This document shows, in pieces, positions 3,137 through 52,911 of a DNA stretch of 64,000 nucleotides (positions are counted from its first letter, which is position 1; each line of letters starts with the position of its first letter). The DNA comes from Trichoplax adhaerens (Eukaryota; Animalia; Placozoa), in contig NW_002060959.1 in assembly GCF_000150275.1 (NCBI RefSeq), positions 246,371 through 310,370 on the forward strand, written 5' to 3'. The notes under the pieces were generated by a model that was not told the origin of the DNA, made no database searches, and saw only the letters and a program-made list of their open reading frames with translations. The translations under genes and the position numbers were made by a program.

Positions 3137-3182
3137 GATAGGCTACATTGAATGGATGAGCTAAGCAGGAATGTACCGCTAG

Positions 3183-4362: not shown

Positions 4363-5937
4363 TTATCCGATATTCATATCGCTAGTATCTGGTAGAAATA
4401 GTGATACTACACCGCCTAACAGTCCTATCAATGCAAACAGTATCAAGCAAGCTGTACAATTTAGGTTAAAGAGTTCAGCAAATATAAACATACCTAAAAT
4501 ACAAGAGCTAATGGCAGAAAAATTTAATATACCCATAGCAGTCGACCTTACATGCGTTGGAAACAATTCTAAAGTCCAGGTAGCTAAAGGAATCCATCCG
4601 TTATTTGCAACCATCGTAAAAACACACACAAGGATCCTGACTGCTATGATATCATCGATTATTAGCATTGCAGCTATAGAAAATACAGCAACAAAGACTA
4701 AAATGATGAATAACCATTTTCGACCTACTCGATTGACTAGCGTAATACATGCAATCGAAAGGGGTATAGTTAGTACATTACCAATTAAAATGTTAACACT
4801 GACACTTGTTATTTGCTCAGTACTGACACATACTGGACTATTGGTATACAAATGATGATTCAAAGGGGACGGCGAAGTTTGATTATAAGTATGCCAACAT
4901 CGTTTACCCATAGTATAATATGAAACCACGGTCGGTAGCCATACAATTAAGCCTTCTTGACTGAAACAGTAACCCATCCACGCTGCTGATAATAATAGTA
5001 ATCGCTTAAGCCATGGTTGCTGATATAATTTTTCGCCTTTTTGCTTTTTAGTATTAGACTCATCCATTTCATCGCCTCTTATAACTATGTCGCCTAACCT
5101 TGATTTAATTAACTTTTCAGATGAAGAGCCATTTCGTTTACAAATTGAATTGATTCGATCTATTTTATCTAAAATAGGTTTAATACCGTCTTTGTTAACT
5201 ATTGCAAATCGTATACTATTCGGCATGTAGAGTAGAAGACAAAAACCGAATAGAACTGGTATATTAGTTACTAGAAGATACACACGCCAGCTAGAAAAAT
5301 GGATCTGGCCTAATTTGATATGAAGTGGATGAGGCAATATAACTAACGCCATTAAAGAACAATAAAGGCCTCCAATTATTACAGCTATAGCTGTACGACA
5401 TCCGAGCAACTTCCCTCTAAATGGTCGAGGGAAAAATTCCAACGCGTACGAACCACTGATAGCAGCCATAGCACTATCAGCAAAGCCAATTATCGAAGCC
5501 ACGATGACTAACATAGTATAGTTGTAAGCAAAAGCAGCTACTACGATCATTATTAAGTAGACGGATATAGAAATGATTAGAATTTTTCGTCGACCTAGGG
5601 TATCACTTAATTTACCCAAGACGACTGAACCAACTGCAATGCCGACCATAAAAGATATACTTAGCCAACCTTTATTGCTTTGGTTTATACCTATATCACA
5701 GGCAGTTATAACTATAAAACCAACGATGTTATAAAATATATTATATCCAGAATGGCAAAGTCCACTGGTTATAAATATAGCATAATGAAATAATCCAATG
5801 TCTAAGCTATCAACGATTTCATCCACACTTGACGACGAAGTAATAGATTCACAATTGAAATTACCCTCTGATTCGCTTAGTAATGCTGTTTTATCGTTAA
5901 TTTTGTCTTGTTCACTGTCCAATCCCTCGAAACCCAT
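4363..5937 (-). CDS. SV2-like MFS transporter, paralog 1 (most divergent), intronless
   Basis: About 12 hydrophobic segments, MFS motif A GKLSDTLGRRK, EFFP..RG, FSSWR, ELFPT.VRSTA, LPDT. First ATG is at 5937; the track start at 5949 is TTG. Confidence 0.9.
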   Translation of the reverse strand: MGFEGLDSEQDKINDKTALLSESEGNFNCESITSSSSVDEIVDSLDIGLFHYAIFITSGLCHSGYNIFYNIVGFIVITACDIGINQSNKGWLSISFMVGIAVGSVVLGKLSDTLGRRKILIISISVYLIMIVVAAFAYNYTMLVIVASIIGFADSAMAAISGSYALEFFPRPFRGKLLGCRTAIAVIIGGLYCSLMALVILPHPLHIKLGQIHFSSWRVYLLVTNIPVLFGFCLLLYMPNSIRFAIVNKDGIKPILDKIDRINSICKRNGSSSEKLIKSRLGDIVIRGDEMDESNTKKQKGEKLYQQPWLKRLLLLSAAWMGYCFSQEGLIVWLPTVVSYYTMGKRCWHTYNQTSPSPLNHHLYTNSPVCVSTEQITSVSVNILIGNVLTIPLSIACITLVNRVGRKWLFIILVFVAVFSIAAMLIIDDIIAVRILVCVFTMVANNGWIPLATWTLELFPTHVRSTAMGILNFSAISSCILGMFIFAELFNLNCTACLILFALIGLLGGVVSLFLPDTSDMNIG

Positions 5938-7429
5938 TTTCCCATACAAGTTTGCAAATAGATGAAGTGACTTAACTTATAATCAAATCAGCATTAGTAG
6001 TATTACTAAACATAGAATATCTAATTTCAATTTTAGAAAAACTATGGTGCTATTAGTACGAACTTTGCAATCAGGACTGTATTGAAACGTAAATAGATTT
6101 TACTTAGTAATAAGCTAATTCTGCTGGGTTACGAGAAGAAATCAACATTTCAATCAGTCATTATCAATATCTTTTCCCCCGAGGATTATGCCTATCCTAA
6201 TCATCTTTCTGTCATAGGAAATATAAACTGTGATGAAATGCGTTACATTGTTAACATTTCAATTCAAAAGATGCTTGATCTGAATTATTCGCTACTAACT
6301 GTATTTAGTTAAAGAATTTATATAGAATTTTATAAAAAGTATGATTCTATTCATCTAAATTAAATGCGATCACACACTATATCATGATCAGACTTTGCAT
6401 TAAGATCTTTAAAGCATACTAAATCTTTTAAAATATTACATCCATAATAAAAGAATAGATCTGTCAAAACTATCAAGAAACTTCCCGTAGGACTATAACA
6501 TAATACTATTGCTCTTTCCGTAGCAATGCATAATTGAATTGAGGCTAGCGTAGAATCCACTGTACTAATATAATATAGCTAGTAGCAAACAAAATTTAAT
6601 TAACCCAAATCCCTATTGTTAGATTCAATTCTCTAATATTAGAATAGGTTAGTTTTCTTGTCTAGAATATTTCCGAAGTTAGTCGGAGATTAAGTAAAGT
6701 AGATAGACTAGTTTAGGTCTGATCACAAAAGCTATTTCGTGAGAAGTTTTTTCATAAGATAAGAATATTACCACCTTATCAGACTTGTTATAATAATAAA
6801 ACACTAATAAGATAATGGATTCTAAAAAACGGAGAATTTACTTACTTCACCATTGGCTTACATTGTCTATCGTCTTTAACAATGTTTGCGATTTATGCAA
6901 GCCAATGGTAAAAATATATAATCAAAGTTAGTGTAAATTAATTATGCGTATGCTTAATACAAAAATTGAACATAGTCTATACAGGATATTATTGTCATCG
7001 AATTACATGCAGGCTAAATATTGCTGAAATGATACCTAATTCTACATACATTGAACTTTATTTAGACATATACAAACAAAGTTGAACTATAATACCGATT
7101 TTACATAGTCTTGAGAATCACCTACATATTGCATTCTAAAACCACTTATCGCTTGGAGATAAGCAGAATCAAAATAAGTTATTAACTATTCAACATATAC
7201 CAATCTACAACTTAGTTCAGGTTCAATAAATGATATCAATAGGCATATAGTATCATAATTAAGGAAAGAATTTGCTCCATTATTTTCTAATGAACAAGAT
7301 TTGACGCTGTATGTGTAACAATAATCTATTAGCGAACAAAATATTATTGGTACTGTGAGATTCCACAGTATGGTACATCGGTTTACTATGGATAAGTAAT
7401 ATTTTTAGAATCTGCTTTAGCAGAAATAA

Positions 7430-10754: not shown

Positions 10755-12362
10755 TTAACTGATATCAACATTAGTTGTATCAGACAGAAATAATGCTGCA
10801 AACCCGCTTAATAGACCCAGAAATGAAAAAATTATTAAAGTTGCTGTACAACTCTTATAAAATAGTAAAGCAAAGATTGTCATGCCTAATATTGATCCCG
10901 TATGTCCTATTAAGTTTAAAATACCAATAGCGGTTGATCGAACCGTAGTAGGGAATAACTCTGAACTCCAAGTTTTATAAGCTATCCATACGTTGTTACT
11001 GATCGATGTAAATAAGCATCCCAATATCAATACACTTAGTTCATTATCTATTAGCAGCATTAATAAAATGCTCAATCCACAAATGGTTATCATTGGGCAG
11101 TAAAGCCATTTTCGACCGGCACGATTCACCAATAGTAAGCATATAATAGCTACAGGTATAGAAAACAAATTTCCAATTAGGATATCCGTAATAACTTTTT
11201 TTAAGCTCTCACCAGTTTGACAAAAGGACACATCAGGAAGTATAGGATGATTTGCTTCCCATGATGAATTAAGCATTTCGTGATTGTTATGCCAACATGT
11301 TTTACCACTTGTATAATAAGAAACGACAGTTGGAAGCCATATGGAAAACCCCTGATCACTGAAACAATTTCCGAACCATCCGACCGATAAAAATAACAAT
11401 CGTTGAAGCCATGGCCTTTTAGTGAACAAGCGAAAGTGTTCTATTTCATTTTGGAATCGATTCTTGTTTGTGTGCTCCTTGCTATCGCCTAGGCTAACAT
11501 GATCTGGTATCGAAAGCAACTGATATTGCTTATCTTTATCATTACTACATTTACAAAATGAATTAATTCGATCAATTTTATCTAGCACAAGCTTTATGCT
11601 TTTCTTTTCGGACTTTACTAACGCAAATCGTAAACTATCTGGCATGAAAAGCAGAATGCAATATCCAATTAGTATGGGTATGATATCAATAAGAAGATAT
11701 AGTCGCCAACTTGAAAAATTGATACCACCTATGCGTTTATAAAATGGATGAGGTAAAGTAATTAAGGCAACAGTCGAGCTAAACAAACTTCCTAAGATTA
11801 AGAATGCAACCATGCTTCCAGCAGCTAATCCTCTCTGACGTCGAGGGAAAAATTCTATAACGTAAGTATGGATGGTTACTGCTAGACCGCTGTGTGAACA
11901 TCCAATTATTGCAGCCATAACCACTAACATATTATAGTTATAAGCAAATACTGATGCAAACATCGACATTAAATTTATCGTCACAGAAAAAATAAAAATT
12001 TTTCGTCTACCATAAGCATCAGCCATTCTACCAAGTACGCCAACCCCAAGAGTAAAACCAATCATCAGTGATAAACTTAGCCATCCCTTGTTACTTGCAT
12101 CAATATCTAAATCACACGCCGAAATAATAATAAAACCAATGGCTTGGTAATATATGTTATATCCAGCAAAACATAGACCGCACGATAATACCATTAAATA
12201 ATGAAATAGTCCAACTTTTAAATTGTCAACAATGTCGTCTATACTAGACGTCAAACCATTCGAATCCATCGCACATCCTGCACCAGAATTTTCTTCGTCA
12301 TCACTTATTAAATGTTTGGTATCATAATCATAGTTATCGTTGCACTCGTTTTCGTTCGTCAT
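10755..12362 (-). CDS. SV2-like MFS transporter, paralog 3
   Basis: Same motifs as paralog 2. First ATG is at 12362; the track start at 12371 is TTG. Confidence 0.92.
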   Translation of the reverse strand: MTNENECNDNYDYDTKHLISDDEENSGAGCAMDSNGLTSSIDDIVDNLKVGLFHYLMVLSCGLCFAGYNIYYQAIGFIIISACDLDIDASNKGWLSLSLMIGFTLGVGVLGRMADAYGRRKIFIFSVTINLMSMFASVFAYNYNMLVVMAAIIGCSHSGLAVTIHTYVIEFFPRRQRGLAAGSMVAFLILGSLFSSTVALITLPHPFYKRIGGINFSSWRLYLLIDIIPILIGYCILLFMPDSLRFALVKSEKKSIKLVLDKIDRINSFCKCSNDKDKQYQLLSIPDHVSLGDSKEHTNKNRFQNEIEHFRLFTKRPWLQRLLFLSVGWFGNCFSDQGFSIWLPTVVSYYTSGKTCWHNNHEMLNSSWEANHPILPDVSFCQTGESLKKVITDILIGNLFSIPVAIICLLLVNRAGRKWLYCPMITICGLSILLMLLIDNELSVLILGCLFTSISNNVWIAYKTWSSELFPTTVRSTAIGILNLIGHTGSILGMTIFALLFYKSCTATLIIFSFLGLLSGFAALFLSDTTNVDIS

Positions 12363-12414
12363 ATTTTCCAAAAGCCAGATTGTAATTTAGACTGCAACGT
12401 ATAATTGTAATGGC

Positions 12415-15717: not shown

Positions 15718-15966
15718 GGTCATTCTCCAGATTTATCAGTCAATTTACAAAAGGATCGGTCATTTTCTAGATTTCCACTCATTTTATAAAATGATTGGTC
15801 ATTCTCTAGATTGACCAGTCATTTTTAGAAATAACCGGTCACTCTCAATATTTACCAGTCATTTTATAATTGACCGGTCATTCTCCAGATTTACCCACCA
15901 GTCATTTTACAGAATGGCCGGTCATTTTCTAAATTTACGATTCCGAAAGTCTGGTCTTTCCCAGGA
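15718..15966 (+). repeat. About 40-bp subterminal tandem repeats of the transposon right end
   Basis: GGTCATTCTCCAGATTTACCAGTCATTTTA-like unit at 15718, 15758, 15797, 15837, 15876 and 15920, plus a partial copy near 15952. Confidence 0.8.
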
Positions 15967-17014: not shown

Positions 17015-18622
17015 TCAGTTAATGTCAAAATTAGTTGTATCTGGTAGAAACAACGCAGTAAATCCGCTTAGGAAGCCTAGTAATGAAAAGATTATCAAAG
17101 TTGCTGTGCAATTCTTATTAAATAGTACAGCAAATGTTGTCATGCCTAATATTGATCCTGTATGTCCTACTATATTTAAAATGCCAGTTGATGTTGATCG
17201 AACTTTCGTAGGGAACAATTCTGCACTCCAAGTTTTATAAGGTATCCAGGCGTTATTACTTATCGACGTAAATACACATCCCAAGATTAATGCTCCGTAT
17301 ACGTTGTCTATTACAACCATTAATAAAATGCTCAATGCACATATTGTTATCATAGGAAAATAGAGCCATTTTCGACCCACACGGTTAATTAATAAAAGAC
17401 ATCCGATAGCGACAGGTAACGATAGTAAGTTTCCAATTAAAATATCTATAATGACTGTTTTTAATTTCTCACCATTTTGACAAGCTGAACTATTAAGATG
17501 TAGACTATGCATTGCATTATGCGATATGTTATGAACATGTTGATGACTATGCCAACATGTTTTTCCGCTTGTATAATAAGAAACGGCACTCGGAAGCCAT
17601 ATCGAAAATCCTTGATCGCCGAAACAAAATCCAAACCATCCCACTGATAGTAGTAACAATCGTCGAAGCCATGGCTGTTTTCCAAAAAATCGAAAGTGTT
17701 CTAATTCATGTCGAAATCGGCTGGTTTTGCTATTATTCTCTTTACGATTACTTGCGCGAGGATGAAGTGATGTCAAAGGTAACGCGTATTGCTTATGTAA
17801 ATCATTCCTACATTTGAAACACGAATTAATTCGATTGATTTTTTTTAATACGAACTCAGCCTTTTTCCTTTCGGATTTTGCCAACGTAAATCGTAAACTA
17901 TCAGGTAGAAAAAGCAATATACAATAGCCAATTAATGTGGGTATCATAACGATGATAAGATAAAGACGCCAACTCGAAAAATAAATCCCTCCTATCTTGT
18001 AGAATGAATGCGGCAATGTAAAAAACGCAACAGTAGAGCCAAGTAAACTCTCGAAGATTAGAAATGAACTCATACATGCACCAGCGATCCCTCTATACTG
18101 TCGAGGGAAAAATTCCATTAAATAATTGTAGATAGTTGCTAATAGACCTGCGTGTGAGCATCCTATTATTGCTGCCAAAATCACTAGCATGTTATAGTTA
18201 TAAGCAAATGCAGAGAGTAGCATAGCTATTAAATTGATCGTCAAAGAAAATAGAAGAATTTTTCTTCTACCGTAAGCATCAGCCAATCTGCCGAATATAC
18301 CAACACTAAGAGTCAGGCTAATCATCATCGATAGACTTAACCATCCCCTGTTACTTATATTGATATCTAAATCACAAGCAGAAATAATAATGTATCCCAT
18401 TGCTTGAAAGTAGACATTATATCCTCCATAGCAAAGACCACACGATAAAATAATTAAATAGTGAAATAATCCGACGTCGATGTTTTCTACTATATCATCG
18501 ATACTTGATATTAAATCATTCGAATCAATGGTACAATCTGAACCGGCGTTTTCATCAATATCACTTATTAAAGCCGTTTCTTCACCGTCTTCTCTCTCTT
18601 CGAATTGATTCTCGATCGTCAT
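17015..18622 (-). CDS. SV2-like MFS transporter, paralog 4
   Basis: 535 aa ORF with GRLADAYGRRK and the other family motifs. Confidence 0.92.
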   Translation of the reverse strand: MTIENQFEEREDGEETALISDIDENAGSDCTIDSNDLISSIDDIVENIDVGLFHYLIILSCGLCYGGYNVYFQAMGYIIISACDLDINISNRGWLSLSMMISLTLSVGIFGRLADAYGRRKILLFSLTINLIAMLLSAFAYNYNMLVILAAIIGCSHAGLLATIYNYLMEFFPRQYRGIAGACMSSFLIFESLLGSTVAFFTLPHSFYKIGGIYFSSWRLYLIIVMIPTLIGYCILLFLPDSLRFTLAKSERKKAEFVLKKINRINSCFKCRNDLHKQYALPLTSLHPRASNRKENNSKTSRFRHELEHFRFFGKQPWLRRLLLLSVGWFGFCFGDQGFSIWLPSAVSYYTSGKTCWHSHQHVHNISHNAMHSLHLNSSACQNGEKLKTVIIDILIGNLLSLPVAIGCLLLINRVGRKWLYFPMITICALSILLMVVIDNVYGALILGCVFTSISNNAWIPYKTWSAELFPTKVRSTSTGILNIVGHTGSILGMTTFAVLFNKNCTATLIIFSLLGFLSGFTALFLPDTTNFDIN

Positions 18623-19181: not shown

Positions 19182-19689
19182 CAGGACTAGTATGTACAAT
19201 GCATAAGAAAGAAAATTACTCGTAAGAGTGAAGTTTCCTGTATCATACACAACCCTTCGTCGATTTAAATTAAAACCAACAACGTTCTCCATGAAGAAAA
19301 TCTTATCAATCGCTTCTTAATCCCAAATGGATTAGTAATACAATGAACACTATCATTAAGTCATGTTTGCAGAATCGAAACAATATGAATGAAGATAATA
19401 TCTTGCTACTGGTATGGATAAAGTGATTTAAATCTATTATTAATCTATGTGGGACCCAACTTTGATATGAATAAAATCCATCATGCCCTTGCGAATTATC
19501 GGTTATTTCAAAGAAGGAAAGATTATTGTCCGGATGGTTCTTTGGCATAATTTAAATAACTCGTCTTTTGTCATGGTAAGTAGGAAGATTGTAACAGCAA
19601 AGCATTTGGTACTTGATAGTGAAGAGTCGCTGATATATCTTAAACTTGCTACTTTAATACGTGAAAACACTCGCTAACGGGCTAATCAA

Positions 19690-20090
19690 TCTTGCTAATA
19701 ATGATACTGCAATCATTTTTTGTCTACTCTAAGCATTAGCAAGTCTATCAGATATGCCATCACCATTACCATAGCCAAGTAAATAAGATATACCAATCCA
19801 ACACTTATTATTTATTTCTATTAATTTCTAAATTGCATATTCCAACAACTACGACACTGATCGCTTGATAAAACAAATAATAACCATTTAGGCCGAGTCC
19901 ATAAGCTCGAATGATTGTATCGTATAATAAAATAGTCCAATGCCTATAGTATCTAAGATCTAATCGGTACTAGATGTTAAATTAATCGAATTAGTGACGT
20001 TATCTAAACCATAAAACTCTTCATTTGAACTTGGTAAGGCTGCTTTATCGTCAACATGATCGTAGTCTTGATACTCCCTCTCAACTACAT
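19690..20090 (-). pseudogene. Decayed 5' fragment of an SV2-like gene
   Basis: Translates as VDDKAALPSSNEEFYGLDNVTNSINLTSSTD*ILDTIGIGLFYY, followed by frameshifted remnants of the CDLDIN and GRLADxYGRRK regions. Confidence 0.8.
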
Positions 20091-21200: not shown

Positions 21201-21554
21201 CTATTCACGATACAAATAGCGTTTTAATAGCATGATGTAGTTACTGTATAAGTTTATCATCGATAGACTTAACCATCCCCTGTTACTTTTATTGATATCT
21301 AAATCACAAGCAGAAAGAATAATGTATCCCATTGCTTGAAAGTAGACATTATATCCTCCATAGCAAAGACCACACGATAAAACAACCAAATAGTGAAATA
21401 ATCCGACGTCGATGTTTTCTACGATATCATCGATACTTGATATTAAATCATGCGAATCAATGGTACAATCTGAACCGGCGTTTTCATCAATATCACTTAT
21501 TAAAGCCGTTTCTTCACCGTCTTCTCTCTCATCGAATTGATTCTCGATCGTCAT
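21201..21554 (-). pseudogene. 3'-truncated duplicate of paralog 4
   Basis: 21256-21554 is about 97% identical to 18324-18622. The frame then runs into intergenic sequence and stops at 21201. Confidence 0.88.
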
Positions 21555-22269
21555 ATTTGTCGATAGCAATATAACATCAACAGCTATAGAATTGCATTGA
21601 TTAAATTAGTCAAAAAATAAGACACGGAACAGATACACAGCTTACGATCACCATCCTTAGTCGCACGATTTTTACTTTTTAGATTTAATCAATGTTCTTT
21701 TCCAATAGCTGATACGATGATAAAGAATAATTAAATGTGACTATCATAGCTAAGATCTTGCAGATGGCACTATTGTCCAGAACTAGAATGAATATCGCGT
21801 AAATCAGAGAATTTCTTGCAAGGGTCAAAGTTTCTTCTATCATGCAAAACACTTTGTAAAGATGTGTTAAAATCAATTACGTTCTCCATGACAACATTCA
21901 TGTCAATCACTTGTTAATCCCAAATGGATTTGTAATAGAATGAACACCAGCATTAAATCATATTTGCCGGATCGAAACTATATGATTCAAGATATAACGG
22001 TTCTATCGGCTTAGCAAAAGTAATTCAAATCTATTGTTAATTTATATAGGTTCCAACCTTGACGTGAATAAAGTTTGTCACTCCCTTACGAATTGTAGGT
22101 TAGATCAAAGGAAGGAGAATTATTTTCCGCCTGATTTTCTAGTAAAATTCAATAGCTCGTCTTTTGATAAGGTAAGCAGGGAGGATCGTAGCAGCAAAAC
22201 ATTTATCAATTAATAAGACTATCATCGATAAATCTTAAACTCCCTACTGTTATAAACAAAAGAAACTGC

Positions 22270-22676
22270 TAATGTGTAAATTAATCTTACTAATAATGAT
22301 ACCTCGATAATTTTTCATCTATCCTAATTCTTATCCAGTCTATTTAATATTCCATCACCAAGACTATAGTTTATCAAATAAGATACTCCAACCCAACCCT
22401 TACTATTTCTATTAATTTCTAAACTGTACACTGAAACAGCTATGAAACCAATCGTTGGATAAAACAAATAACAGCCATCTATGCCAATTTCACAAGTTCT
22501 AATGATTGTACTATCTAATATAATAGTCCAACATCCGTGGCATCTTGTCGAAGCTACATGTTAAATTAATTGAATTGGTGACACTGTCTAAAGCATAAAT
22601 TTCTTCATTTGAGCTTGGCAAACTTGCTTTATCATCAACATTATCGTAGTCTTGATACCCTCTCTGAACGACATTG
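22270..22676 (-). pseudogene. Second copy of the decayed SV2-like 5' fragment
   Basis: Aligns with 19690-20090 and translates as VDDKASLPSSNEEIYALDSVTNSINLT. Confidence 0.78.
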
Positions 22677-31481: not shown

Positions 31482-33101
31482 TTATCCAATGCCTAAGTCG
31501 GTAGTATCCGGTAGAAATAATGCTAAAAATGCGCTTAGAAAGCCAAGTGCGGAAAATATTGTATATGTAGCTATGCAATTAGTATAAAATAACGCTGCAA
31601 ATATCACCATGCCTAGTGCACCTCCTAAATGTCCATTTACACCTATGATGCCTTGGGCAGTTGCTCTAAATTCAGTACGGAATAATTCTGTACTCCAAAT
31701 TTTAAGCGGAGTCCACCCGTTAGTCATAATAGACGTAAAAATGCAAGCTAGGATGAGGACGCCCTGTAAATTGTCGATTATCAATAATAATAAAATGCAT
31801 AAACCACTCATAGACGCTAAAATAATGTATAATGCTTTCCGACCGATACGATTAATAAGTAGAACACATAAAATTGCGATAGGTATGGATATTAAATGAC
31901 CAAGAAAGATATTTAATATCACTGTTCTTATATTATTACCGCTTTGACAGTCCGAAGCGACATTTTGTGATGAATGTGTAGTATACCACGATAGATTGTT
32001 ATTCTTGCCGCTATGATGATGATGCCAACATGTTTGGCCATTCACATAATAAGCAATAACTGTCGGTAACCAAATTGTAAGCCCTTGTTCTGCGACGTAA
32101 TATCCGAGCTGTACCAAAGACATAAGCAATAACCGTTTACGCCAAGGTGGTTGCAGAAGTCCCCGAATATCTTGCAGAAAAGTATTTCCTTTATCATTTT
32201 CAATATCATCACTCATTTCTTCTATTGGTAAATTGCGATGGCCTACTTTACAATAAATAACTTGTTGATAGGAATCGACTTCAGTCTTATAACAGCTATT
32301 AATTTGATTAATTTTATTTAATACGTCTCGAAGACCTTTCTTATCGTTCTTAGCTATTACAAATCGTAAACTTCTAGGCAAAAATAACAGTGCACAAAAA
32401 CTCAATAAAGATGGAACAGAGTCTACAAGTAGATAAAGTCGCCAATTTGTAAAGTATATCGCGCCAATAGGGCTATAAAATGAATGAGGTAATATAACTA
32501 ACGCGATAACAGAACCATAAATATTACCAAATATTAGAAATGACGATAAAACGGTAGCCGCTCTACCCCTATAACGACGAGGAAAAAATTCTAACAGATA
32601 AGAATGAATAGCTGCAACAACAGCAGCATGAGTACTACCAACCAAGCCAAACATGATAACAAGCATTAGATAGTTATAAGCAAAAGCACTTGCTAACATT
32701 CCTATTAAATTTATTAGTAACGCGATGACGAGAATTTTTCGTCGGCCATAAACATCAGCTAACCTACCAAATATGCTAGCACCGATAGCAAGGCCGATCA
32801 TATAAGCTAGACTTAGCCAACCTTTATTATTTCGATTAATGTCTAAATCGCATGCTGAAATAATAACAAAACCGATCGATTGATAAAAGATAGAGTATCC
32901 ACTATAGCCAAGTCCACATATTAAAGTGATAATATAATGGAATAATCCAATATCCAAAGAATCGACGATCTCATCTATTCTGGATGATAAATCAATCGAT
33001 TCAGTCGAGCAATCAGAAGTATAGAGTTCTTCATTTTGGCTCAATAAACGGGTTTTATCCTTGACATTATCGTTATCCCGAAATTGATTTTCAACCGCCA
33101 T
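31482..33101 (-). CDS. SV2-like MFS transporter, paralog 6
   Basis: 539 aa ORF with the family motifs and a CWHHHH loop. Confidence 0.92.
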   Translation of the reverse strand: MAVENQFRDNDNVKDKTRLLSQNEELYTSDCSTESIDLSSRIDEIVDSLDIGLFHYIITLICGLGYSGYSIFYQSIGFVIISACDLDINRNNKGWLSLAYMIGLAIGASIFGRLADVYGRRKILVIALLINLIGMLASAFAYNYLMLVIMFGLVGSTHAAVVAAIHSYLLEFFPRRYRGRAATVLSSFLIFGNIYGSVIALVILPHSFYSPIGAIYFTNWRLYLLVDSVPSLLSFCALLFLPRSLRFVIAKNDKKGLRDVLNKINQINSCYKTEVDSYQQVIYCKVGHRNLPIEEMSDDIENDKGNTFLQDIRGLLQPPWRKRLLLMSLVQLGYYVAEQGLTIWLPTVIAYYVNGQTCWHHHHSGKNNNLSWYTTHSSQNVASDCQSGNNIRTVILNIFLGHLISIPIAILCVLLINRIGRKALYIILASMSGLCILLLLIIDNLQGVLILACIFTSIMTNGWTPLKIWSTELFRTEFRATAQGIIGVNGHLGGALGMVIFAALFYTNCIATYTIFSALGFLSAFLALFLPDTTDLGIG

Positions 33102-37454: not shown

Positions 37455-38045
37455 AGATATAGAAAATAATACGAAAGTGGTTACGCAATTGGTATAAAAT
37501 AGTGTTGCAAATAATATCATGCCCAATATTGACCCTAAACGAGATATTACATTTAAAAGTCAATAGCAGTTGATCTGAATTCAGTACGAAATAATTCTGT
37601 ACTCCAAATTTTATAAGGTATCTAGCCAGTATTTGTTATAGATGTAAAAATACACGTTGAGATTGTAACACTTTGCATGTTGTCCATTAATAGAATCATT
37701 AAAATATTCAATTTTGTAGTAGATACCAATGAAATATACAATAATTTCCAACCAACGCGATTTATAAGTAAAACACATAAAATTGTAAAAGGAATTTAAA
37801 ATAGATTGCCAATAAAGATATTAAATAATATTGTCTTTAAATTGTCATCAGTTTGGTAAATTAGAGTCGACATGATTCAATGAGTACGTAAAATTCCATG
37901 GTAGATGGTCCATGTCGCTATAATTATACCAACATATTTTACCTCTGATATAATGATACTTTTCTTGTCATTCTTGGCTAACACAAATCGTAAACTATGA
38001 GGCATAAATAAAAGTACGTAAAAACTTAATAAAGCAGGTATGGGG
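37455..38045 (-). pseudogene. Decayed 3'-half fragment of an SV2-like gene with an internal deletion
   Basis: IPALLSFYVLLFMPHSLRFVLAKNDKK is joined directly to the GKxCW loop. Frameshifted WSTELFRTEFRSTA and GMILFATLFYTNC follow, ending in an (ATATAG)n run. Confidence 0.88.
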
Positions 38046-40423
38046 CTGTAGTACAGCCACCACATATAGCTTAGATTACGATTCAAAATTGTACGAGTAT
38101 AGGCTAAACTGTACGCTAGGTAATAAGACTGCATAAGTGTCTAATTGTGGAAGATGTTTACACTACGTATTGTAGTAATTGTATTGAAATGCTTATATTA
38201 AAAATCGCAGGTAATAATAGATAGCATTAATTATGTTAGTACAGTGAGATTTGTATTGTGCCGCTTCTGTCCTTGGTAGTTAGACGAACCTAACTTCTGT
38301 AATAAAGTGAAATCTGCAAGAAACTGTAGTTCTTGATTTATTGTTTTGAAGATCACTTTATCACAACGGTTAGCGAGTAGTTCATGTAAATGGCCGCAAA
38401 GCATCTAAAGATTAATCCGATGACTTAGTACAATACAGGAAATCATTATAAGTAAGCCTAAAATTAAATTCTCATCTTTTATGCAAGAATGAACTGCCGC
38501 ATAGGTTACTTGAATTTATTGCTTCTGTATTGATCGATGCTTTCGTAGTAAATTGTAAATTTGCTTGGTTAATATTCAAATCACTATACCCAAATAAATT
38601 ATAATATTATATGTTAAAAGTCCAAAGTAGCTATTAATAGCTTTCTTTAAAAAATATTACTGTTACGTCACTGTTTTTCATATGTTTAGTAATATTAAAA
38701 TAGCAAAGACAGCATTACAATTTAAGGGCTTATAAATTCATTATCAATCTTAAACTCCTACTGTGAATACACCGAGACAGGCTATCGTTACAATCTTCTT
38801 GCTTGGAAAATATCTTCTCTAGAAATTATATTATTCTTTTTCTAAATATCATTATGCAATGAAGGTCAACTTCTATAATTCTCCTCCAATATTTATATTG
38901 TAATAGCAGTTGAAGCTTTTAAAATTTAACTAATTTAGTGCGATTTCAGAAAATTTTACTTAGTATCATAATGCCGTGCGTTGTAAGCCAGATGACTTCA
39001 TGGAGGGAGGAGTAGAATTTAATATGAATAATACGAAATAGTATAAATTGTTAAGAGTTGTGCTTTGTAAGATTGTGATTTAAGCGATAAATTTAGTTAA
39101 GATAATACACTTGCTCTAATGTTGATAAAACTGCTTGCTAAATTTAATCATAAAATACTGTAAATCTTAATTAGGCTATATTATGTTGTAATAGAACATA
39201 GGATCAATCCAAACGTTTTGATCTGGATTCTTATTCAATTAAGATCGCCGGTCTGTCTTAGTGTTTTCTTATTGCTACATGACTACACTGTTGTCACAAA
39301 TTAATTCTTGTGATCAGATGCTACTAATCTCGTAGATTACTTATATGCTCCGACGATGAAGTGCAACATTGGAAGACCAATTAGTATTACACAAGTACAA
39401 AGCCATTTTAAGCCGAAATAGTATGCAACAGAATATTAAGAGCTTGAAACGCAATTTGGCTGCTCGTCCTTTAGAAGCTAGCTACAAACCTGCGGTCCGT
39501 ATTAGCGAATTTTACCTTACGCAATATTATATATGTTCAGTAAACTCAACCAACAAATTAGATAACGGAAATCCAGGGTTAGTAGAGCCTAAATGAACTA
39601 TCTAACAACAAGCGAATTTCTTGTTAACGACATCATGGCTAAACGGAGAGTAGAAGATGACAATTATGCCATCTCTAGAATTAGTATTAAGAGTAGATGG
39701 TATTCGTCGATTTTAAAATGGCCAAAGAAATATTAAAAATGAATTTTAAACTCTAAACTTCTAGAACTACAGTAGAAAATATGCTAAATGCCATATAGAA
39801 TTTTTTGTGTTCAGCAATAGATTTTAAACGCTTTTGGCTCAAACACCCGACTACCCTGTATCTCGTGACTAGCTTAGAATAATTCAGAGATAAATTGATA
39901 GACTAATATTACCAACCGTCCTGTGTAAAATATAAAAGGTGGTATTATTCAGGAACTGAATAGTTTAAGATAGAGAGATAAAAAGATAAAAGTTGCAATA
40001 ATCCTAAAAATCATGAACAATGTCATTTTTAGATAGTTTGGCTTTAAAGTAGTAGTTCTACGCTTTGATAGTCCTTTTTTAGTGATTTTATACGGTTGCT
40101 GTTAATAGCTAACATAAACTAGTATTTCTCCTAAACTTAAGTTGAGCTAAAATTTGAAGCTGTCAGTTTTAATAACTTTTTTACGTTTATTATCAATTAT
40201 CAATATATTTCAAAAATCATCATAAAACGGTACGACTCGGATAACGACATTTATTTCTACCAACATCTTACTTCATCAGAGCAATTTTTAAAATTAGAAG
40301 TCCTAAGAATAATAACCACAAAAAAATACTTGTATTTGCCTGATTAAAAGTGTACAAGCGTAATCTTTACTACAAAAATCGGGTAATGGAATAATTAAAG
40401 AATTATATACGTATAAAATACAA

Positions 40424-42040
40424 CTATCCAATATCAGAGTTAGATGTATCGGGTAGAAATAAAGCTGCAATTACGGCTATTAGACCTAGTGAGGTAAACA
40501 ATATAAGTGTAGCTATGCAATTACTATAATAAAGTGCACTAAATTCTATTATACCTGCTATAGCTGCAGTATGCCCTATTACAAATAAAATACCAGTAAC
40601 AGTTGTTCTGAATTCAGTAGGAAATAATTCTGTACTCCAAATTTTACATGGTATCCATGTATTAATTGTAAACGCTGTAAAGATACTTGCTACGATCATG
40701 ACACTAAGCCTATTATCCAGTAAGAGAATCATTAAGATACAAATAACACAGGTGAATGCTAAGCAAATAAATAATCTTTTACGACCAATACGATTAATGA
40801 ATAAAAAGCATAAAATTAAAATTGGTAATGACAACAGATTGCCAATAAAGATATCTAATATAATTGCCTTTAAGCTATCACCAGTTTGACAATCAGAATT
40901 GATGCTATGTAATAGACTTGTGGTATTCCATGATACATTTTCTGTCTTATTATGATTATGCCAACACGTTTTACCACTCGCATAAAATGACATTACAGTC
41001 GGTAGCCACATAGTAAATACTTGATCGGAGGTACAATATCCGAGCCATATTATAGATAATAATATAAATCGTCGGCGATTTGGTTCTTTCATCATTTCTC
41101 GAATATCATCCATAAAATTTCTGTTCTTTTCTTTTCTAATATTGCTATCGATATCATTTTCTTGTAAATCAAGAAGATGGGATAGTTTAGAATATGATAC
41201 TTTTTCATACGATTTGGATGTGTTGGTAAAACACGAATTGATTTTATTTATTCTGCGTAATACATCTCGAAGACCTTTCTTGTCGTTCTTAGCTAAAACA
41301 AATCGTAAACTATTAGGCATAAATAAGAGAATACAGAAACTTATCAAAGCTGGTATAGCACCTATGAGAACATAAAGTCGCCAACTCGTAAAGTTGATAG
41401 AACCTATAGCATAGTGAAATGGGTGGGGTAATAAAAGTAATGCTATGGCAGAGCAGTATAAATTTTCAAGTATAAGAAATGAAGATACAAATGCGCCAGC
41501 TTTACCTCTAGAACGTCGAGGAAAAAATTCTATAACATAAGTATGGGAAACTGTAGCAATGCCACCATAGGCAATGCCAATGAAACCATTCATAATAACA
41601 AGCATGATATAATTATAAGCAAATACACACGCTAACACACATACTAAATAAATTAGTAACGACATTATGAAGATTTTTCGTCTACCATAAGTATCAGCTA
41701 GTCTACCAAATATACCAGAACTGATTGTATAGCCGATATTAAAAGCCAAACTTAGCCAACCCTTGTTATTTCTGTTAATGTCTAAATCGCACGCCGAAAT
41801 GGTAATGAAGCTAATGGTTTGATAGCACACAGCATATCCGCCGAAGCCAAGTCCGGATCCTATCATGATCATATAATGAAAGAATCCAATATCCAAGGAA
41901 TCTACTATCTCATCTATATTGGATGCTAAATTATTAGAATCGCAGGAGAAATCTGTATCGGAAAACTCTTCATTTTGATTCATCCTAGTTGTACAATCAT
42001 CATCACCACTGTCTGAAAAAAGTTCCTTCTCAATAGCCAT
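40424..42040 (-). CDS. SV2-like MFS transporter, paralog 8
   Basis: 538 aa ORF with the family motifs. Confidence 0.92.
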   Translation of the reverse strand: MAIEKELFSDSGDDDCTTRMNQNEEFSDTDFSCDSNNLASNIDEIVDSLDIGFFHYMIMIGSGLGFGGYAVCYQTISFITISACDLDINRNNKGWLSLAFNIGYTISSGIFGRLADTYGRRKIFIMSLLIYLVCVLACVFAYNYIMLVIMNGFIGIAYGGIATVSHTYVIEFFPRRSRGKAGAFVSSFLILENLYCSAIALLLLPHPFHYAIGSINFTSWRLYVLIGAIPALISFCILLFMPNSLRFVLAKNDKKGLRDVLRRINKINSCFTNTSKSYEKVSYSKLSHLLDLQENDIDSNIRKEKNRNFMDDIREMMKEPNRRRFILLSIIWLGYCTSDQVFTMWLPTVMSFYASGKTCWHNHNKTENVSWNTTSLLHSINSDCQTGDSLKAIILDIFIGNLLSLPILILCFLFINRIGRKRLFICLAFTCVICILMILLLDNRLSVMIVASIFTAFTINTWIPCKIWSTELFPTEFRTTVTGILFVIGHTAAIAGIIEFSALYYSNCIATLILFTSLGLIAVIAALFLPDTSNSDIG

Positions 42041-43804: not shown

Positions 43805-45418
43805 TTATCGAATATCAGAGTTAGATGTATCGGGTAGAAATAATGCCGCAATTATACTTAGTAGACCTAAAGAAGCGAATATTGTATATGTAGCGATACA
43901 ATTTATATAATACAGTTTCGCGAATAATATTAAGCCTACTATAAGTCCTGAATATCCTATTACGAATAAAATACCGACAACAGTCGATCTGAATTCAGTC
44001 CGAAATAGTTCTGTAGTCCAAATTTTACAAGGTATCCATGCATTAGTAGTTATCGCTGTAAAAATACATGCTATTATCATGACACTTAGCCTATTATCTA
44101 ATAACAGTATCATTAATATACAAAATCCGCTAATAGATGCCAAGATAATATATAATACTTTTCGACCTACTCGATTAATAAGTAGAAAACAAAAAATTGT
44201 AACTGGTAATGAAAATAGATTGCCTATAAGAATATCTAATATAATAGCCTTTAAGCTATCGCCACTTTTACAATCAGAATTGACACCATTGTATAGATGT
44301 GTAGTATTCCATGGTATATTTTCTGTCTTATTATAACCATGCCAACAAGTTTTACCACCCTCATAACTAGCCATCACTGTCGGTAACCATATGGTGAATC
44401 CATGATCGGCGATAGAATATCCGATCCATACTATAGATAATAATATAAATCGTCGACGCCAAGGTTGTTTCATTAATTCTCTAATATCATCCGCGAAATT
44501 TCTACGCTCTTCTTTTCTAATCTTACTATGGATGTCATTTTGTTGTAAATCAAGAGTCGTTATTTTAGAATATAATACTTTATCATGCGAAGTACGACTA
44601 GTACTAAAACACGAATTGATTTGATCAATTTTATTTAATACATCTCGAAAAGCTTTTTTGTCGTTCTTCGCTAATACAAATCTTATACTATTAGGCATAA
44701 ATAAAAGTGTACAAAAACTTAATAACGCTGGAATAGCGCTTATGAGAATATAAAGTCGCCAACTTGTAAAGTAGATAGAGCCTATAGCATAGTAAAATGG
44801 GTAAGGTAATAAAGGTAACGCTATGGCTGAGTTGTATAAATTTTCAAGTGTTAGAAAGGAAGACAAAACTGCACCAGCTCTACCTCTAGAACGTCGAGGA
44901 AAAAATTCTAAAACATAAGAATGAGCAGCTGTAGCAATGCCGCCATAGGCGCAACCATTGAAACCGGTCATGATAACAAGCATGGCATAATTATATGCGA
45001 ATGCACACGCTAGCATGCATATTAAATTAATGAATAACGATATTACGAACATTTTTCGTCTACCATAAGTATCAGTTAACCTACCAGATATACCAGAGCC
45101 AATAACGGAACCGATTATAAAAGCTAAACTCAACCAATGCTTGTTACTTCTGTTAATGTCTAAATCGCATGCCGCAACGACAATGAAACTGATTGTTTGA
45201 TAAAATAAGGTACATCCACCGAAGCCAAGTCCGGACGCTATCGTGATTATATAATGAAATAATCCAATATCGATAGAATCTACAATATCATCTATATGAG
45301 TTGTTAAATCATTAGAATCGCTAGAGTAATCTGTATCCGAAGGCTGCTGCTTTTCATTGATTAAAGCTGTTTTATCGTCAACATCACTATCTGTTTGGAC
45401 TTGCTTCTCGATCTCCAT
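43805..45418 (-). CDS. SV2-like MFS transporter, paralog 9
   Basis: 537 aa ORF with the family motifs. Confidence 0.92.
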   Translation of the reverse strand: MEIEKQVQTDSDVDDKTALINEKQQPSDTDYSSDSNDLTTHIDDIVDSIDIGLFHYIITIASGLGFGGCTLFYQTISFIVVAACDLDINRSNKHWLSLAFIIGSVIGSGISGRLTDTYGRRKMFVISLFINLICMLACAFAYNYAMLVIMTGFNGCAYGGIATAAHSYVLEFFPRRSRGRAGAVLSSFLTLENLYNSAIALPLLPYPFYYAIGSIYFTSWRLYILISAIPALLSFCTLLFMPNSIRFVLAKNDKKAFRDVLNKIDQINSCFSTSRTSHDKVLYSKITTLDLQQNDIHSKIRKEERRNFADDIRELMKQPWRRRFILLSIVWIGYSIADHGFTIWLPTVMASYEGGKTCWHGYNKTENIPWNTTHLYNGVNSDCKSGDSLKAIILDILIGNLFSLPVTIFCFLLINRVGRKVLYIILASISGFCILMILLLDNRLSVMIIACIFTAITTNAWIPCKIWTTELFRTEFRSTVVGILFVIGYSGLIVGLILFAKLYYINCIATYTIFASLGLLSIIAALFLPDTSNSDIR

Positions 45419-48108: not shown

Positions 48109-48140
48109 CTAGTGCAAACTCCCGTCGCTTTGCTGACGGT
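48109..48140 (-). mobile_element. Helitron-like 3' terminus
   Basis: The minus strand reads CCGTC-AGCAAAGC-GACGG (hairpin, 48139-48122), then 9 nt, then CTAG (48112-48109) followed by T. This is the canonical Helitron end geometry. Confidence 0.65.
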
Positions 48141-49521
48141 TTAAAGAAGCGAATATTGTATATGTAGCGATACAATTTATATAATACAGTTTCGCGAATA
48201 ATATTAAGCCTACTATAAGTCCTGAATATCCTATTACGAATAAAATACCGACAACAGTCGATCTAAATTTAGTATGGAATAACTCTGTAGTCCAAATTTT
48301 ACAAGGTATCCATGCATTAGTAGTTATCGCTGTAAAAATACATGCTAATATCATGACACTTAGCCTATTATCTAATAACAGTATCATTAAAATACAAAAT
48401 CCGCTAATAGATGCCAAGATAATATATAATACTTTTCGACCTACTCGATTAATAAGTAGAAAGCAAAAAATTGTAACTGGTAATGAAAATAGATTGCCTA
48501 TAAGAATATCTAATATAATAGCCTTTAAGCTATCGCCGCTTTTACAATCAGAATTGACACCATTGTATAGATGTGTAGTATTCCATGGTATATTTTCTGT
48601 CTTATTATAACCATGCCAACAAGTTTTACCACCCTCATAACTAGCCATCACCGTCGGTAACCATATGGTGAATCCATGATCGGCGATAGAATATCCGATC
48701 CATAATATAGATAATAATATAAATCGTCGACGCCAAGGTTGTTTCATTAATTCTCTAATATCATCCGCCAAATTTCTACGCTCTTCTTTTCTAATCTTAC
48801 TGTGGATGTCATTTTGTTGTAAATCAAGAGTCGTTATTTTAGAATATAATACTTTATCATGCGAAGTACGACTAGTACTAAAACACGAATTGATTTGATC
48901 AATTTTATTTAATACATCTCGAAAAGCTTTTTTGTCGTTCTTCGCTAATACAAATCTTATACTATTAGGCATAAATAAAAGTGTACAAAAACTTAATAAC
49001 GCTGGAATAGCGCTTATGAGAATATAAAGTCGCCAACTTGTAAAGTAGATAGAGCCTATAGCATAGTAAAATGGGTAAGGTAATAAAGGTAACGCTATGG
49101 CTGAGTTGTATAAATTTTCAAGTGTTAGAAAGGAAGACAAAACTGCACCAGCTCTACCTCTAGAACGTCGAGGAAAAAATTCTAAAACATAAGAATGAGC
49201 AGCTGTAGCAATGCCGCCATAGGCGCAACCATTGAAACCGGTCATGATAACAAGCATGACATAATTATATGCGAATGCACACGCTAGCATGCATATTAAA
49301 TTAATGAATAACGATATTACGAACATTTTTCGTCTACCATAAGTATCAGCTAGTCTACCAGATATACCAGAACTGATTGTGTAACCGATTATAAAAGCTA
49401 AACTCAACCAATGCTTGTTACTTCTGTTAATGTCTAAATCGCATGCCGCAACGACAATGAAATTGATTGTTCGATAAAATAAGGTTGAAAACCTCCAAAT
49501 TGACAGCAACTTTGCATTCAT
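48109..49521 (-). pseudogene. Doubly truncated near-identical copy of paralog 9 forming an open 470-aa chimeric ORF
   Basis: 48142-49485 is colinear without indels with 43868-45211. The ATG and first 12 codons, and the last about 10 codons, come from unrelated flanks. Confidence 0.8.
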
Positions 49522-50859: not shown

Positions 50860-52460
50860 AATTAATTATCGATGAGTAGCATGGTTGAAATACTCAATGC
50901 AGTAGCAAACAGCAAATATAACACTTTACGACCTATTCGATTAATGAGTAGAATGCCTAGGTAAAATAGCAACGGGTACTGAAAATAAATTACCAAGTAA
51001 ATGATTGCCTTCAAATTGTTACCCGTTTGACAATTGAAAGCGAAAGAGTGCAATAAATGTGTAGAATTCGTTGATAGATGATTCTCCATGCTATTGCGGC
51101 TATGCCAATATGTTTTGCCTTGGACATAATAAGTAAGGATTACGGATAGCAATATGGTAAATGCCTAGTCACTGACACAATAACTAAACCATACTCTCGA
51201 TGATAGTATTAATCGTTAGCGCTATGATGGTTTCATCATTTTACAAATATTGTCTATATAGCTTTCACGTCCTTCATTTCCAGTTTGATCATCGATGCTT
51301 ACATCGAATTGACTTATCATACAGTAAATAGATTGTTGCTGTAAATTCTTTTCAGTGTGTCATAACGAATTAATTTGATCCATTTTCTGTAATATATCTG
51401 AAGTGGTTTTCGTGTCGTTTTTACCCAGTGCAAATCGTAAATTAATTATAATAGGATACATACTGTACACTTGAATAGATATAATTGGGATAGTCCCTAC
51501 CTATATGAAGGTGAAGTTGCTAATTTGAAAAGTGGATGGCACCCAAAAGGAATGTAAACTGAATGAGGTAATAAAAGTAAAGCAATAGCAGTGCCGAGTT
51601 AATTTCCTAAAATTGTAAACGAAGACATGATTACAGTAGCTTAACCTCCATAACGACGAGGAAAAAATACTAAAATACAATACTAAAACACAATTATGAA
51701 TCGTTGCGTTTATCCCACCATAAGTACTTTCAACGAAGCCTGATGTGACTGCTAACATAGCGTAGTGATAAGCAAAGGCGTCTGCCAATACGCTGATTGA
51801 ATGGATTACTTAAGCGATTATGAGAATTCTTCGCCGACCATAAGTATTGGCTAGTCTACCAAAGATGCTGGCACCGCTGGTAAGGCCCATCTTAAATGCC
51901 AGGCTTAGCCAACCTTTATTATATCGGTTAATGTCTAAATCGCAAACGACAACGACAACAAAATTGCTAATACTGTGTATAGGATATGAACCATAGTAGA
52001 GTCCTGTCACAAAACAGCTTGCGTGATGTTTCTAAACTAAACTATCTACTCTTAAGGTTCCCCGACTAACTCCGGACATCCTCAGTAAAGGACAACTAAC
52101 TTATTCCTATACTATAGAAAACGAGTCCAACGATAGGTTTAGGTTATTAAATATTTTATTATGGACTATAACAGCTTAGTACCAATGTACTGTAGCGTAG
52201 CCTTGGTGGAACTGAGATTAGAAATTAAATTATTAGCAACTTTACTACTAGCCACTTATCACGGAGCATCAAGCTCCGTAACAAGTCCACACTCTATAAC
52301 GATTATATAATGAAATAAAGCAATATCGAAGGAATCGATCCTGGATGTCAAATCAATCGAATCAATAAAGTGATCCGAGCTATATAATTAATTCTTCATG
52401 GTAACTTATTAAAGCGGTATCATCAACTTCTTTTTGAAATGTTTTTGGTCAATCTTATGG
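50860..52460 (-). pseudogene. Heavily decayed SV2-like pseudogene interrupted by a solo LTR
   Basis: Fragments VCDLDINRYNKGWLSLAF..GRLANTYGRRR, AFAYHYAML, YYVQGKTYWH and LINRIGRKVLY in shifting frames with stops. Confidence 0.9.
52005..52283 (-). mobile_element. 279-bp solo LTR
   Basis: TGTCAC...GTAACA termini (TG..CA), 5-bp TSD AGTCC at 52000-52004 and 52284-52288, and a minus-strand AATAAA near 52155. Removing it restores the TM1 coding sequence. Confidence 0.8.
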
Positions 52461-52911
52461 AAAAACATTATGCCACTTACTCCAAGTAAAATTAGATTAT
52501 ACTTAGATCACCTCGATGATAATTCAAGGAGTCCGGTCTTATCGTTATTACTGTAGTCATCGGCAAAGCATCCATTGCAAGTATCCATTGAAACAAACCA
52601 ATATCGAAACTAATATGGAAGGAATCGATCATTTCATCGATCCTACAGTAGATGTCAAATCAATCGAATCAATAAAGTGATCAATAAAGTGATCAATCGA
52701 ATCAATAACGTGATCCGAGCTGTACAATTCTTCATCGTGACTTATTAAAGGGGTATCATCAGCTTCTTTTTGAATATTTTTGGTCAATCTTCTGGAAAAA
52801 CATCACGTCACTTATTCCAAGCAAAACTAGATTATACTTACATCAACTCGATCTGAATAGAGTCCGAGCATATCGTTATTACTGTAGTCATCGGCAAAGT
52901 ATCTACTGCAG
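52320..52911. repeat. About 300-bp tandem duplication of the pseudogene 5' end and upstream DNA
   Basis: 52320-52580 aligns with 52612-52911 (GATGTCAAATCAATCGAATCAATAAAGTGATC...ACTGTAGTCATCGGCAAAG). Confidence 0.85.

Follow-up and report, generated by a model that had tools for sequence, protein, structure and literature searches.

An array of intron-free SV2-related transporter genes in Trichoplax adhaerens, probably founded by a retrogene

Background

Why should an animal without neurons carry, side by side and free of introns, a series of genes that resemble SV2? The question is raised by a 64,000-nucleotide stretch of the genome of Trichoplax adhaerens, positions 246371-310370 of contig C1398 (G000 assembly), referred to here as the window; coordinates below are those of the window unless a contig is named. 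An array of about 48 kb (4363-52911) holds nine intact genes of the Major facilitator superfamily (MFS), each a single open reading frame (ORF), together with one truncated copy and five decayed copies, all on the minus strand. The T. adhaerens genome is generally intron-rich. We propose that this array and two others, with 17 intact genes in total, are a single-exon side branch of the SV2-type MFS transporters that is specific to placozoans, and we give the full explanation, including founder and function, a probability of about 0.6.

As a piece of evolution the array is of an ordinary kind, the tandem birth-and-death of a transporter family. Two traits are less ordinary: its probable founding by a retrogene, and an SV2 pocket that has been remodelled throughout in an animal that has neither neurons nor a true SV2. 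The genes are already present in the public annotations of T. adhaerens and of Trichoplax sp. H2, where they are named SV2A, SV2B and SV2C. A literature search found no account of these placozoan arrays, nor of their lack of introns or the rebuilding of the pocket. Given the public annotation and the comparable expansions in insects described below, the degree of surprise is moderate.

Results and discussion

Nine intact single-exon genes and six broken copies

The ORF listing contained nine uninterrupted minus-strand frames of 528-539 aa as listed, or 524-539 aa when first-ATG starts are counted. For g1 and g3 the listed bounds are 4363-5949 and 10755-12371, and the probable first-ATG starts lie at 5937 (524 aa) and 12362 (535 aa). 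Five decayed copies were recovered using tblastn and, with the truncated g10, bring the number of broken copies to six. The features are as follows.

4363..5937, minus strand: g1, intact single-exon SV2-like MFS gene, 524 aa; equals the TRIADDRAFT_60683 model; H2 orthologue 524 aa
7430..9040, minus strand: g2, intact, 536 aa (ORF, Pfam and alignment)
10755..12362, minus strand: g3, intact here, 535 aa; one in-frame stop in the Trichoplax sp. H2 orthologue
17015..18622, minus strand: g4, intact, 535 aa (ORF, Pfam and alignment)
19657..20085, minus strand: psiA, N-terminal fragment (codons about 3-142), five stops (tblastn)
21255..21780 (coding part 21255-21554), minus strand: psiB, the first 100 codons of g4 (93% aa identity) plus about 225 bp of upstream DNA; 91% nt identity to 18324-18846
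22249..22669, minus strand: psiC, N-terminal fragment, frameshift and two stops (tblastn)
25469..27085, minus strand: g5, intact, 538 aa; AF2 model with pLDDT 84
31482..33101, minus strand: g6, intact, 539 aa
34661..36277, minus strand: g7, intact, 538 aa; 84% nt identity to g6, including about 450 bp upstream
37464..38062, minus strand: psiD, C-terminal remnant with internal deletion, several stops (tblastn)
40424..42040, minus strand: g8, intact, 538 aa; equals the TRIADDRAFT_60691 model
43805..45418, minus strand: g9, intact, 537 aa
48097..48141, minus strand: repeat end of about 45 nt, hairpin CCGTC..GACGG then CTAG; high-copy repeat adjoining g10
48109..49521, minus strand: g10, open 470-aa ORF, partial g9 copy (g9 codons 70-517 at 48142-49485)
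50865..52760, minus strand: psiE, nearly full-length decayed copy, at least six stops, frameshifts, duplicated N-terminal pieces up to about 52917
33150-33160, 36330-36340, 42095-42105 and 45470-45480: upstream block of g6-g9

This inventory bears out the initial annotation, which had reported nine intact genes of about 535 aa and at least six broken copies, all on the minus strand and without introns, beside an intron-rich housekeeping gene. That neighbour, on the left flank (<1-3142, minus strand), is a multi-exon DnaJ/ZUO1-like/zf-C2H2_jaz gene. A placozoan host had also been suggested and is indeed the source: besides TRIADDRAFT_60691 and TRIADDRAFT_60683, the protein matches include a 99% identical Trichoplax sp. 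H2 protein.

The array proteins belong to the MFS. Pfam MFS_1 matched all ten ORFs at 107-129 bits (cut-off 33.4), and all ten also passed the Sugar_tr threshold. The ten window proteins could be aligned end to end at 41-70% identity, with G112, D116, G119 and R120 of GRLADxYGRR (MFS motif A) invariant. The four motifs that had been quoted for the family, SNKGWL, GRLADxYGRR, LPH..F.SWR and ELFPT..RSTA, are present in the alignment.

SV2-related proteins that are not SV2 proper

By profile, fold and nearest neighbours, the array proteins are SV2-related MFS proteins in the broad sense (SLC22B/AMTF9). Among PDB sequences, the array profile scored SV2B at 193 bits and SV2A at 182, followed by GlcP at 75 and SLC22A6 at 71. 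The AlphaFold model of g5 (pLDDT 84, pTM 0.83) has 12 transmembrane (TM) helices; its best match among PDB folds was SV2A (9okf; E 4e-21, TM-score 0.84, 22% identity), and SV2A and SV2B occupied Foldseek ranks 1-17. When 1.84 billion representatives were searched exhaustively with the profile, scores above 400 bits went to placozoan proteins, after which the scores dropped to 273 bits and ran on as a continuum. Among the non-placozoan names sampled from the 150 best proteins of that search, every descriptive name was SV2 or SV2-like and the rest were generic or nameless; SVOP occurred neither among the names retrieved for these 150 nor among the PDB chains. The closest clusters in a language-model atlas were SV2-like, and the closest named relatives were 'SV2B/2C-like' genes of invertebrates and fish.

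The proteins are nevertheless short forms and not SV2 proper, since the alignment to SV2B skips residues 422-539 (the luminal domain), the alignment to SV2A starts only at residue 146, and no window protein matches Pfam LD_SV2 (PF23894, a pentapeptide-repeat beta-helix between TM7 and TM8), for which the long forms of vertebrates and invertebrates score 40-135 bits. TM1 begins at about residue 53, which leaves an N-terminus of about 50 residues compared with the synaptotagmin-binding one of more than 140 aa in SV2. NCBIfam TIGR01299 (synapt_SV2) matched the window proteins at 124-137 bits in two stretches, below its cut-off of 637. The match to SV2/SLC22B claimed from the motifs thus stands as a relationship and fails as an identification with SV2 itself, from which the proteins also differ in their pocket residues.

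Among such long forms are three invertebrate proteins of 650-667 aa, P0043 (Glandiceps), P0040 (Owenia) and P0064, that carry LD_SV2 above the Pfam threshold and group with vertebrate SV2A at 100 in the SH-like approximate likelihood-ratio test (SH-aLRT).

Two further arrays and an intron-bearing relative

A six-frame search of the whole assembly found two further arrays of the same intronless family:

C1398:154691-186997, plus strand: second array on this contig, six intact copies and remnants
C1414:1267574-1308616: two intact copies and one broken

All eight additional intact copies are single ORFs, and the genome total is 17 intact intronless copies in three arrays. Two copies of the second C1398 array, at 174.9k and 179.3k, are nearly identical. 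An exon at C1414:1,337.7k, first considered as a possible SVOP locus, reads ELFPTE and looks like a further fragment of the family.

A multi-exon relative with at least five exons lies at C1401:~1,700,975-1,704,343. Compared one exon at a time, it is 53-59% identical to a conserved short 'SV2C-like'/'SV2B-like' orthogroup (520-550 aa) that occurs in Hydra, molluscs, annelids, brachiopods, amphioxus, sharks and ray-finned fishes. LD_SV2 had no match anywhere in the T. adhaerens genome, and a long-form SV2 query found no counterpart of the luminal domain in it; T. adhaerens therefore appears to lack a true SV2. Three tandem intron-bearing MFS genes lie at C1395:262000-285000. They were considered as SVOP loci and set aside, one translated exon (PESPRFLV), by our own reading of that exon and without a family scan, resembling sugar porters of the GLUT8/Tret type.

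One intronless clade and its probable founder

Phylogenies were built using FastTree and IQ-TREE on a 70-row set, and the approximately unbiased (AU) test was run on 34 rows under LG+G4. The 17 intronless copies and eight metagenomic relatives form one clade (100 SH-aLRT) on a stem of about 1.0 substitutions per site, in which the C1414 copies take the basal position and the second C1398 array an intermediate one, with the window array the most derived. Individual T. adhaerens copies (g1, TaB_166k, TaB_162k and the C1414 pair) have metagenomic relatives as their partners in the tree, and g5-g9 and P0006-8 multiplied separately, so several lineages predate the split and duplication went on later. 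The two metagenomic relatives that were looked up are genomic contigs with single ORFs.

Every copy in the clade is intron-free, and both the C1401 relative and the outgroups bear introns; within the conserved short group, the genes of Hydra and Lingula span 48.7 kb and 13.3 kb. The combination of one all-intronless clade with a conserved paralogue that has introns agrees with a single founder free of introns. Plausibly, and most simply, this founder was a retrocopy of an intron-bearing SV2-like gene, as we infer from these gene structures, and the flank marks of retroposition have probably been eroded at the present divergence. As to the parent, the AU test rejected neither the conserved short group (p-AU 0.14) nor long SV2 (p-AU 0.39) as sister of the clade. 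The initial annotation had supposed one amplified retrocopy and had called for a search for an intron-containing parent. The single intronless clade, the multi-exon C1401 paralogue and the DNA-level duplication units described below speak for the former, and the search did yield an intron-bearing relative, whose orthogroup is a candidate source lineage.

Tandem duplication followed by birth-and-death

In a DNA self-comparison, neighbouring copies were the most alike (g9/g10 97.9%, g6/g7 84% over 2.06 kb, g8/g9 78%, g2/g3 77.6%), and the trees resolved the window copies as g1 | g2-g4 | g5,(g6,g7),(g8,g9), close to the grouping 1 | 2-4 | 5-7 | 8-9 first proposed. The same comparison showed that upstream and spacer DNA belongs to the duplication units. 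psiA and its flank are 74% alike to psiC and its flank, which indicates duplication of a unit of about 2.9 kb, in which the 5' end of g4 was copied together with a pseudogene. A block AAGATTG(A/G)T(A/T)TATTC, about 50-60 nt before the ATG, is common to g6-g9 and partly present in g5; its retention in g6-g9 implies that the duplicates carried promoter-proximal DNA with them. Gene conversion was considered as the source of neighbour similarity and is not needed, since the synonymous divergence (dS) of 0.31 for g6/g7 matches the 70% identity of the spacers.

The truncated g10 may have another origin. It differs from g9 at 28 of 1344 nt, lacks the cytosolic N-terminus, the start of TM1 and the C-terminal end, and has ends unrelated to g9. 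On the 3' side its resemblance to g9 breaks off exactly at the hairpin-plus-CTAG repeat end of about 45 nt. A first look gave 361 candidate matches to this repeat end genome-wide, and 39 of the 40 scored lie at other places with 87-100% identity; the other side of g10 is 315 nt of unique DNA. Capture of a g9 fragment by a Helitron-like element, in place of unequal crossover, may account for g10.

Purifying selection acts on the intact copies. Pooled over g1-g8, the comparison of H1 with H2 gave a ratio of non-synonymous to synonymous divergence (dN/dS) of 0.34 from 45.5 synonymous and 55.5 non-synonymous differences. Paralogue pairs gave dN/dS of 0.20-0.35 at dS from 0.31 (g6/g7) to more than 1. 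With g9/g10 included, at a dS of about 0.04 estimated from difference counts, duplicate ages vary widely.

The H2 array is collinear with that of the window at 98.5-98.7% nucleotide identity. Its orthologue of g3 (L036:3567-5183, NOWV01000294.1) carries one in-frame stop and is annotated as two genes of 320 aa and 173 aa; H2 may have lost the gene recently, or the stop may be an error of sequencing. The family thus combines broken copies, duplicates of varied age, a stop in one H2 orthologue and separate multiplications. The birth-and-death mode that had been suggested is supported, though not proven, by the pseudogenes, the H2 g3 stop and the interleaved metagenomic relatives.

A rebuilt pocket and a common sorting motif

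Long SV2 and the conserved short group have a common pocket signature, D-E-R-W-Y-Y-W-N-D-E, made up of Asp and Glu in TM1, Arg in TM4, Trp in TM5 (Trp300 of SV2A), Tyr-Tyr in TM7 (Tyr462), Trp-Asn...Asp in TM10 (Trp666 and Asp670) and the Glu of PESPR. The numbering and roles of Trp300, Trp666, Tyr462 and Asp670 are taken from 10.1101/2024.05.07.592960, and the two acidic TM1 residues of SV2 from PMC5438990. At the signature sites most window copies read Y, Y/F, A/T, L, D/E, Q, W, I/T, K; only the TM10 Trp, equivalent to Trp666, is kept, and it is kept in every copy. The TM1 Asp/Glu pair has become Y/F/C with Y/F/L/C, mostly Tyr with Tyr or Phe; the Trp300 equivalent is L/I/V, mostly Leu; the Tyr462 equivalent is Q, E or H, so that Tyr-Tyr is mostly Asp/Glu-Gln; and the Asp670 equivalent is Lys in eight of nine window copies and 12 of the 17 T. 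adhaerens copies. The TM4 Arg, the equivalents of Tyr461 and Asn667 and the PESPR Glu are likewise replaced in the array proteins. The Lys and an acidic residue may form a pair within the cavity. The first gene, g1, differs from the other window copies at several of these sites, and the C1414 copies hold an intermediate state. Three signature sites were read in the C1401 gene, ADAVE, the TM4 Arg and WNALD, and all three are kept.

Window paralogues were also compared with conserved-group orthologues at equal identity (0.52). TM4 (p 0.004) and TM5 (p 0.03) were more variable among the paralogues, by a crude procedure of 12 tests in which the Bonferroni-corrected p for TM4 is about 0.05, and the luminal loops and the C-terminus were better conserved. 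As the pocket is rebuilt relative to SV2 and the paralogues differ most in TM4 and TM5, it is probable that different solutes are carried.

Of 25 sequences, 24 have two cysteines in the TM7-8 loop, and every one has between one and three NxS/T sequons there. An aligned N-terminal [DE]xxxL[LIM] motif is found in 13 of 17 T. adhaerens copies, in seven of the eight metagenomic relatives and in nine of 13 sampled members of the conserved short group, and in only one of nine insect proteins. Sialin and similar lysosomal MFS carriers offer a parallel in their N-terminal dileucine signal. A lysosomal or secretory role is hinted at by this motif. The lysosomal CLEAR motif TCACGTGA had no match in the window, where 0.6 matches would be expected by chance.

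Proposed explanation and its alternatives

Our explanation runs as follows. One intron-free gene, most simply a retrocopy, would have been amplified by tandem duplication at the DNA level that carried promoters and spacers along. Birth-and-death would then have kept some old lineages and left others as recent duplicates, truncated copies and decayed pseudogenes. The proteins would be 12-helix secondary transporters in which a short TM7-8 loop, probably disulfide-bonded and N-glycosylated, takes the place of the SV2 luminal domain. The acidic dileucine motif would sort most copies, through AP adaptors, to endolysosomal or secretory-vesicle membranes. There they would carry small solutes that are probably unlike the substrate of SV2 and unlike one another's. 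A more specific version is that a single intron-free SV2-type gene gave rise to 17 or more solute transporters of vesicles or lysosomes whose pocket is rebuilt, in a graded series from the canonical C1401 gene through the intermediate C1414 copies to the remodelled window copies; in all these particulars together it is doubtful.

Several points weigh against our explanation. The trees and the AU test are compatible with a sister relation of the clade to long SV2 as well as to the short conserved group; the placozoan origin of the metagenomic relatives is assumed; and introns may have been lost by a route other than retroposition. The assignment to the SV2 type rather than the SVOP type rests on score ranking, source names and pocket residues, the trees having been built without SVOP or SLC22A sequences. 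As for function, the crudeness of the helix comparison counts here, the dileucine motif is missing in g2, g7 and g8, and motifs of this type also serve basolateral sorting. SV2 entries are absent from the supplements of Najle et al. 2023, and no literature citing the TRIADDRAFT identifiers of the array genes was found.

The alternative that survives best is that the genes form a plasma-membrane uptake or efflux repertoire comparable to the OAT/OCT members of SLC22A, serving nutrient uptake or xenobiotic clearance in the feeding epithelium. SLC22A proteins belong to the same MFS subgroup and likewise form tandemly duplicated, substrate-diversified repertoires; tandem, cavity-diversified MFS expansions are typical of detoxification and nutrient repertoires, and TM4 and TM5 are variable here. 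NCBIfam TIGR00898 (OCT/SLC22) scores 141-149 bits in the window proteins, and in direct comparison slightly above the SV2 model (148 versus 136 bits), and three of nine window copies have no dileucine motif. TIGR00898 remains far below its own cut-off of 551, however. SV2A and SV2B are much better matches than SLC22A chains, both by profile (193 versus 71 bits) and by fold, and the large glycosylated TM1-2 loop of SLC22A is absent, only about 10 residues being found in its place. Most copies, like the conserved short group, also retain the dileucine motif. We regard a plasma-membrane repertoire as possible, though on the unlikely side.

Less probable is a place for the family in the SVOP orthogroup, outside the SV2-type branch. 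The legend of Fig. S13 of a 2026 preprint mentions a Trichoplax duplication in the 'SVOP orthology group' (10.64898/2026.02.14.704838). This duplication may be the array family, which is a further point against our assignment. The architecture would suit SVOP as described in PMC5438990, given a length of about 540 aa, the lack of LD4 and a short TM7-8 loop that contains Cys. On the other side, no SVOP name was among those retrieved for the 150 best proteins, whose descriptive names were all SV2 or SV2-like; the atlas neighbours are SV2-like, and the TM10 Trp is kept in every copy. Membership in the SVOP orthogroup thus seems to us quite improbable.

It is far less probable still that the proteins are not transporters and act, as SV2 does, in trafficking or regulation, for example in partnership with the exocytosis machinery. 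Neither SV2 nor SVOP has an established substrate (PMC5438990), and SV2A has a part in synaptotagmin trafficking; the preprint 10.1101/2024.05.07.592960 does cite transport of galactose by SV2A in yeast. The array proteins, however, have about 50 residues where SV2 has its long synaptotagmin-binding N-terminus, GRLADxYGRR (motif A) and EFFPRxxRG are invariant or nearly so, and variation in the cavity helices fits changing substrates better than a changing partner surface.

That the cluster is a set of decaying retro-pseudogenes with frames open by chance, as six broken copies out of 15 and the open yet truncated g10 might suggest, can hardly be credited in view of nine intact 1.6-kb frames, dN/dS of 0.34 against H2 and of 0.2-0.35 between paralogues at dS of up to 1 or more, and single-ORF relatives that persist in divergent metagenomic genomes.

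Comparison with related families

The SV2-type offshoot that we propose can be set beside its relatives. SV2A, SV2B and SV2C (SLC22B1-3) and the invertebrate long forms have the same 12-TM MFS fold and are the best match in sequence and fold. They have in common with the array the CDL loop after TM1, GxLADxxGRR, EF.P...RG, SWR and EL(F/Y)PT..R.TA, the TM10 Trp and a glycosylatable luminal TM7-8 loop. They differ in the LD_SV2 domain, the long N-terminus and the full pocket signature, whereas the array genes are single-exon and number 17.

The conserved short orthogroup of cnidarians, lophotrochozoans, amphioxus and fishes resembles the array proteins in length, in an architecture without LD4 and in the dileucine motif, and is a candidate source lineage of the founder (AU p 0.14). 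Unlike the array, it is intron-rich, stands as a lone copy within ±10 kb at the one viewable locus (Lingula), and has both about 50% identity across phyla and the full SV2 pocket signature; the array proteins are 26-33% identical to it. SVOP and SVOPL (SLC22B4-5), which are likened here by description, are vesicular short forms that lack LD4 and are conserved beyond vertebrates (PMC5438990).

Insects, too, have multiplied short SV2-related transporters in a lineage-specific way. Ten SV2-related genes have been counted in Drosophila (Perland et al. 2017, PMC5627054), and the present analysis recovered a large clade of insect 'SV2-like' proteins, six of them similar and encoded on a single Callosobruchus contig. 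The premise of the initial annotation that the SV2 family is normally small therefore fails, being a vertebrate view. These expansions lie partly on one contig and have variable pocket residues, as in the array. Unlike the array copies they form an independent clade (96 SH-aLRT), and the one sawfly SV2-like gene examined contains introns, its 558 aa being spread over 3.9 kb, and has no paralogue within 10 kb.

SV2, which matters as a drug target and toxin receptor, has no established transport function. One conserved SV2-like gene beside a selected, intron-free, 17-fold derivative with changes in the pocket argues that the SV2 fold works as a substrate-specific transporter outside synapses. 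If this is true, knowing what these non-neuronal paralogues carry could answer the decades-old question of what the SV2 fold transports. The array also supplies many naturally occurring variants of the pocket for use in transport assays. In terms of genome evolution, it is a clear example of tandem birth-and-death after founding by what was probably a retrogene.

Other features of the window

A 166-aa ORF on the plus strand (4355-4855) runs antisense within g1 and is most likely a chance frame. The spacer between g3 and g4 holds a 40-bp repeat (15718-15938) and a 223-aa plus-strand ORF (14561-15232) that matches Pfam Znf_SCAND3 at 32 bits (cut-off 27) and is probably the remnant of a hAT/GIN-type transposase. 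Clear exons were not seen in the 53-64 kb part of the window. An assembly gap of 50 N lies at 57187-57236, and tandem satellites with units of 92, 103 and 108 bp occupy 55035-55910, 58204-59150 and 62662-63045 to the right of the array.

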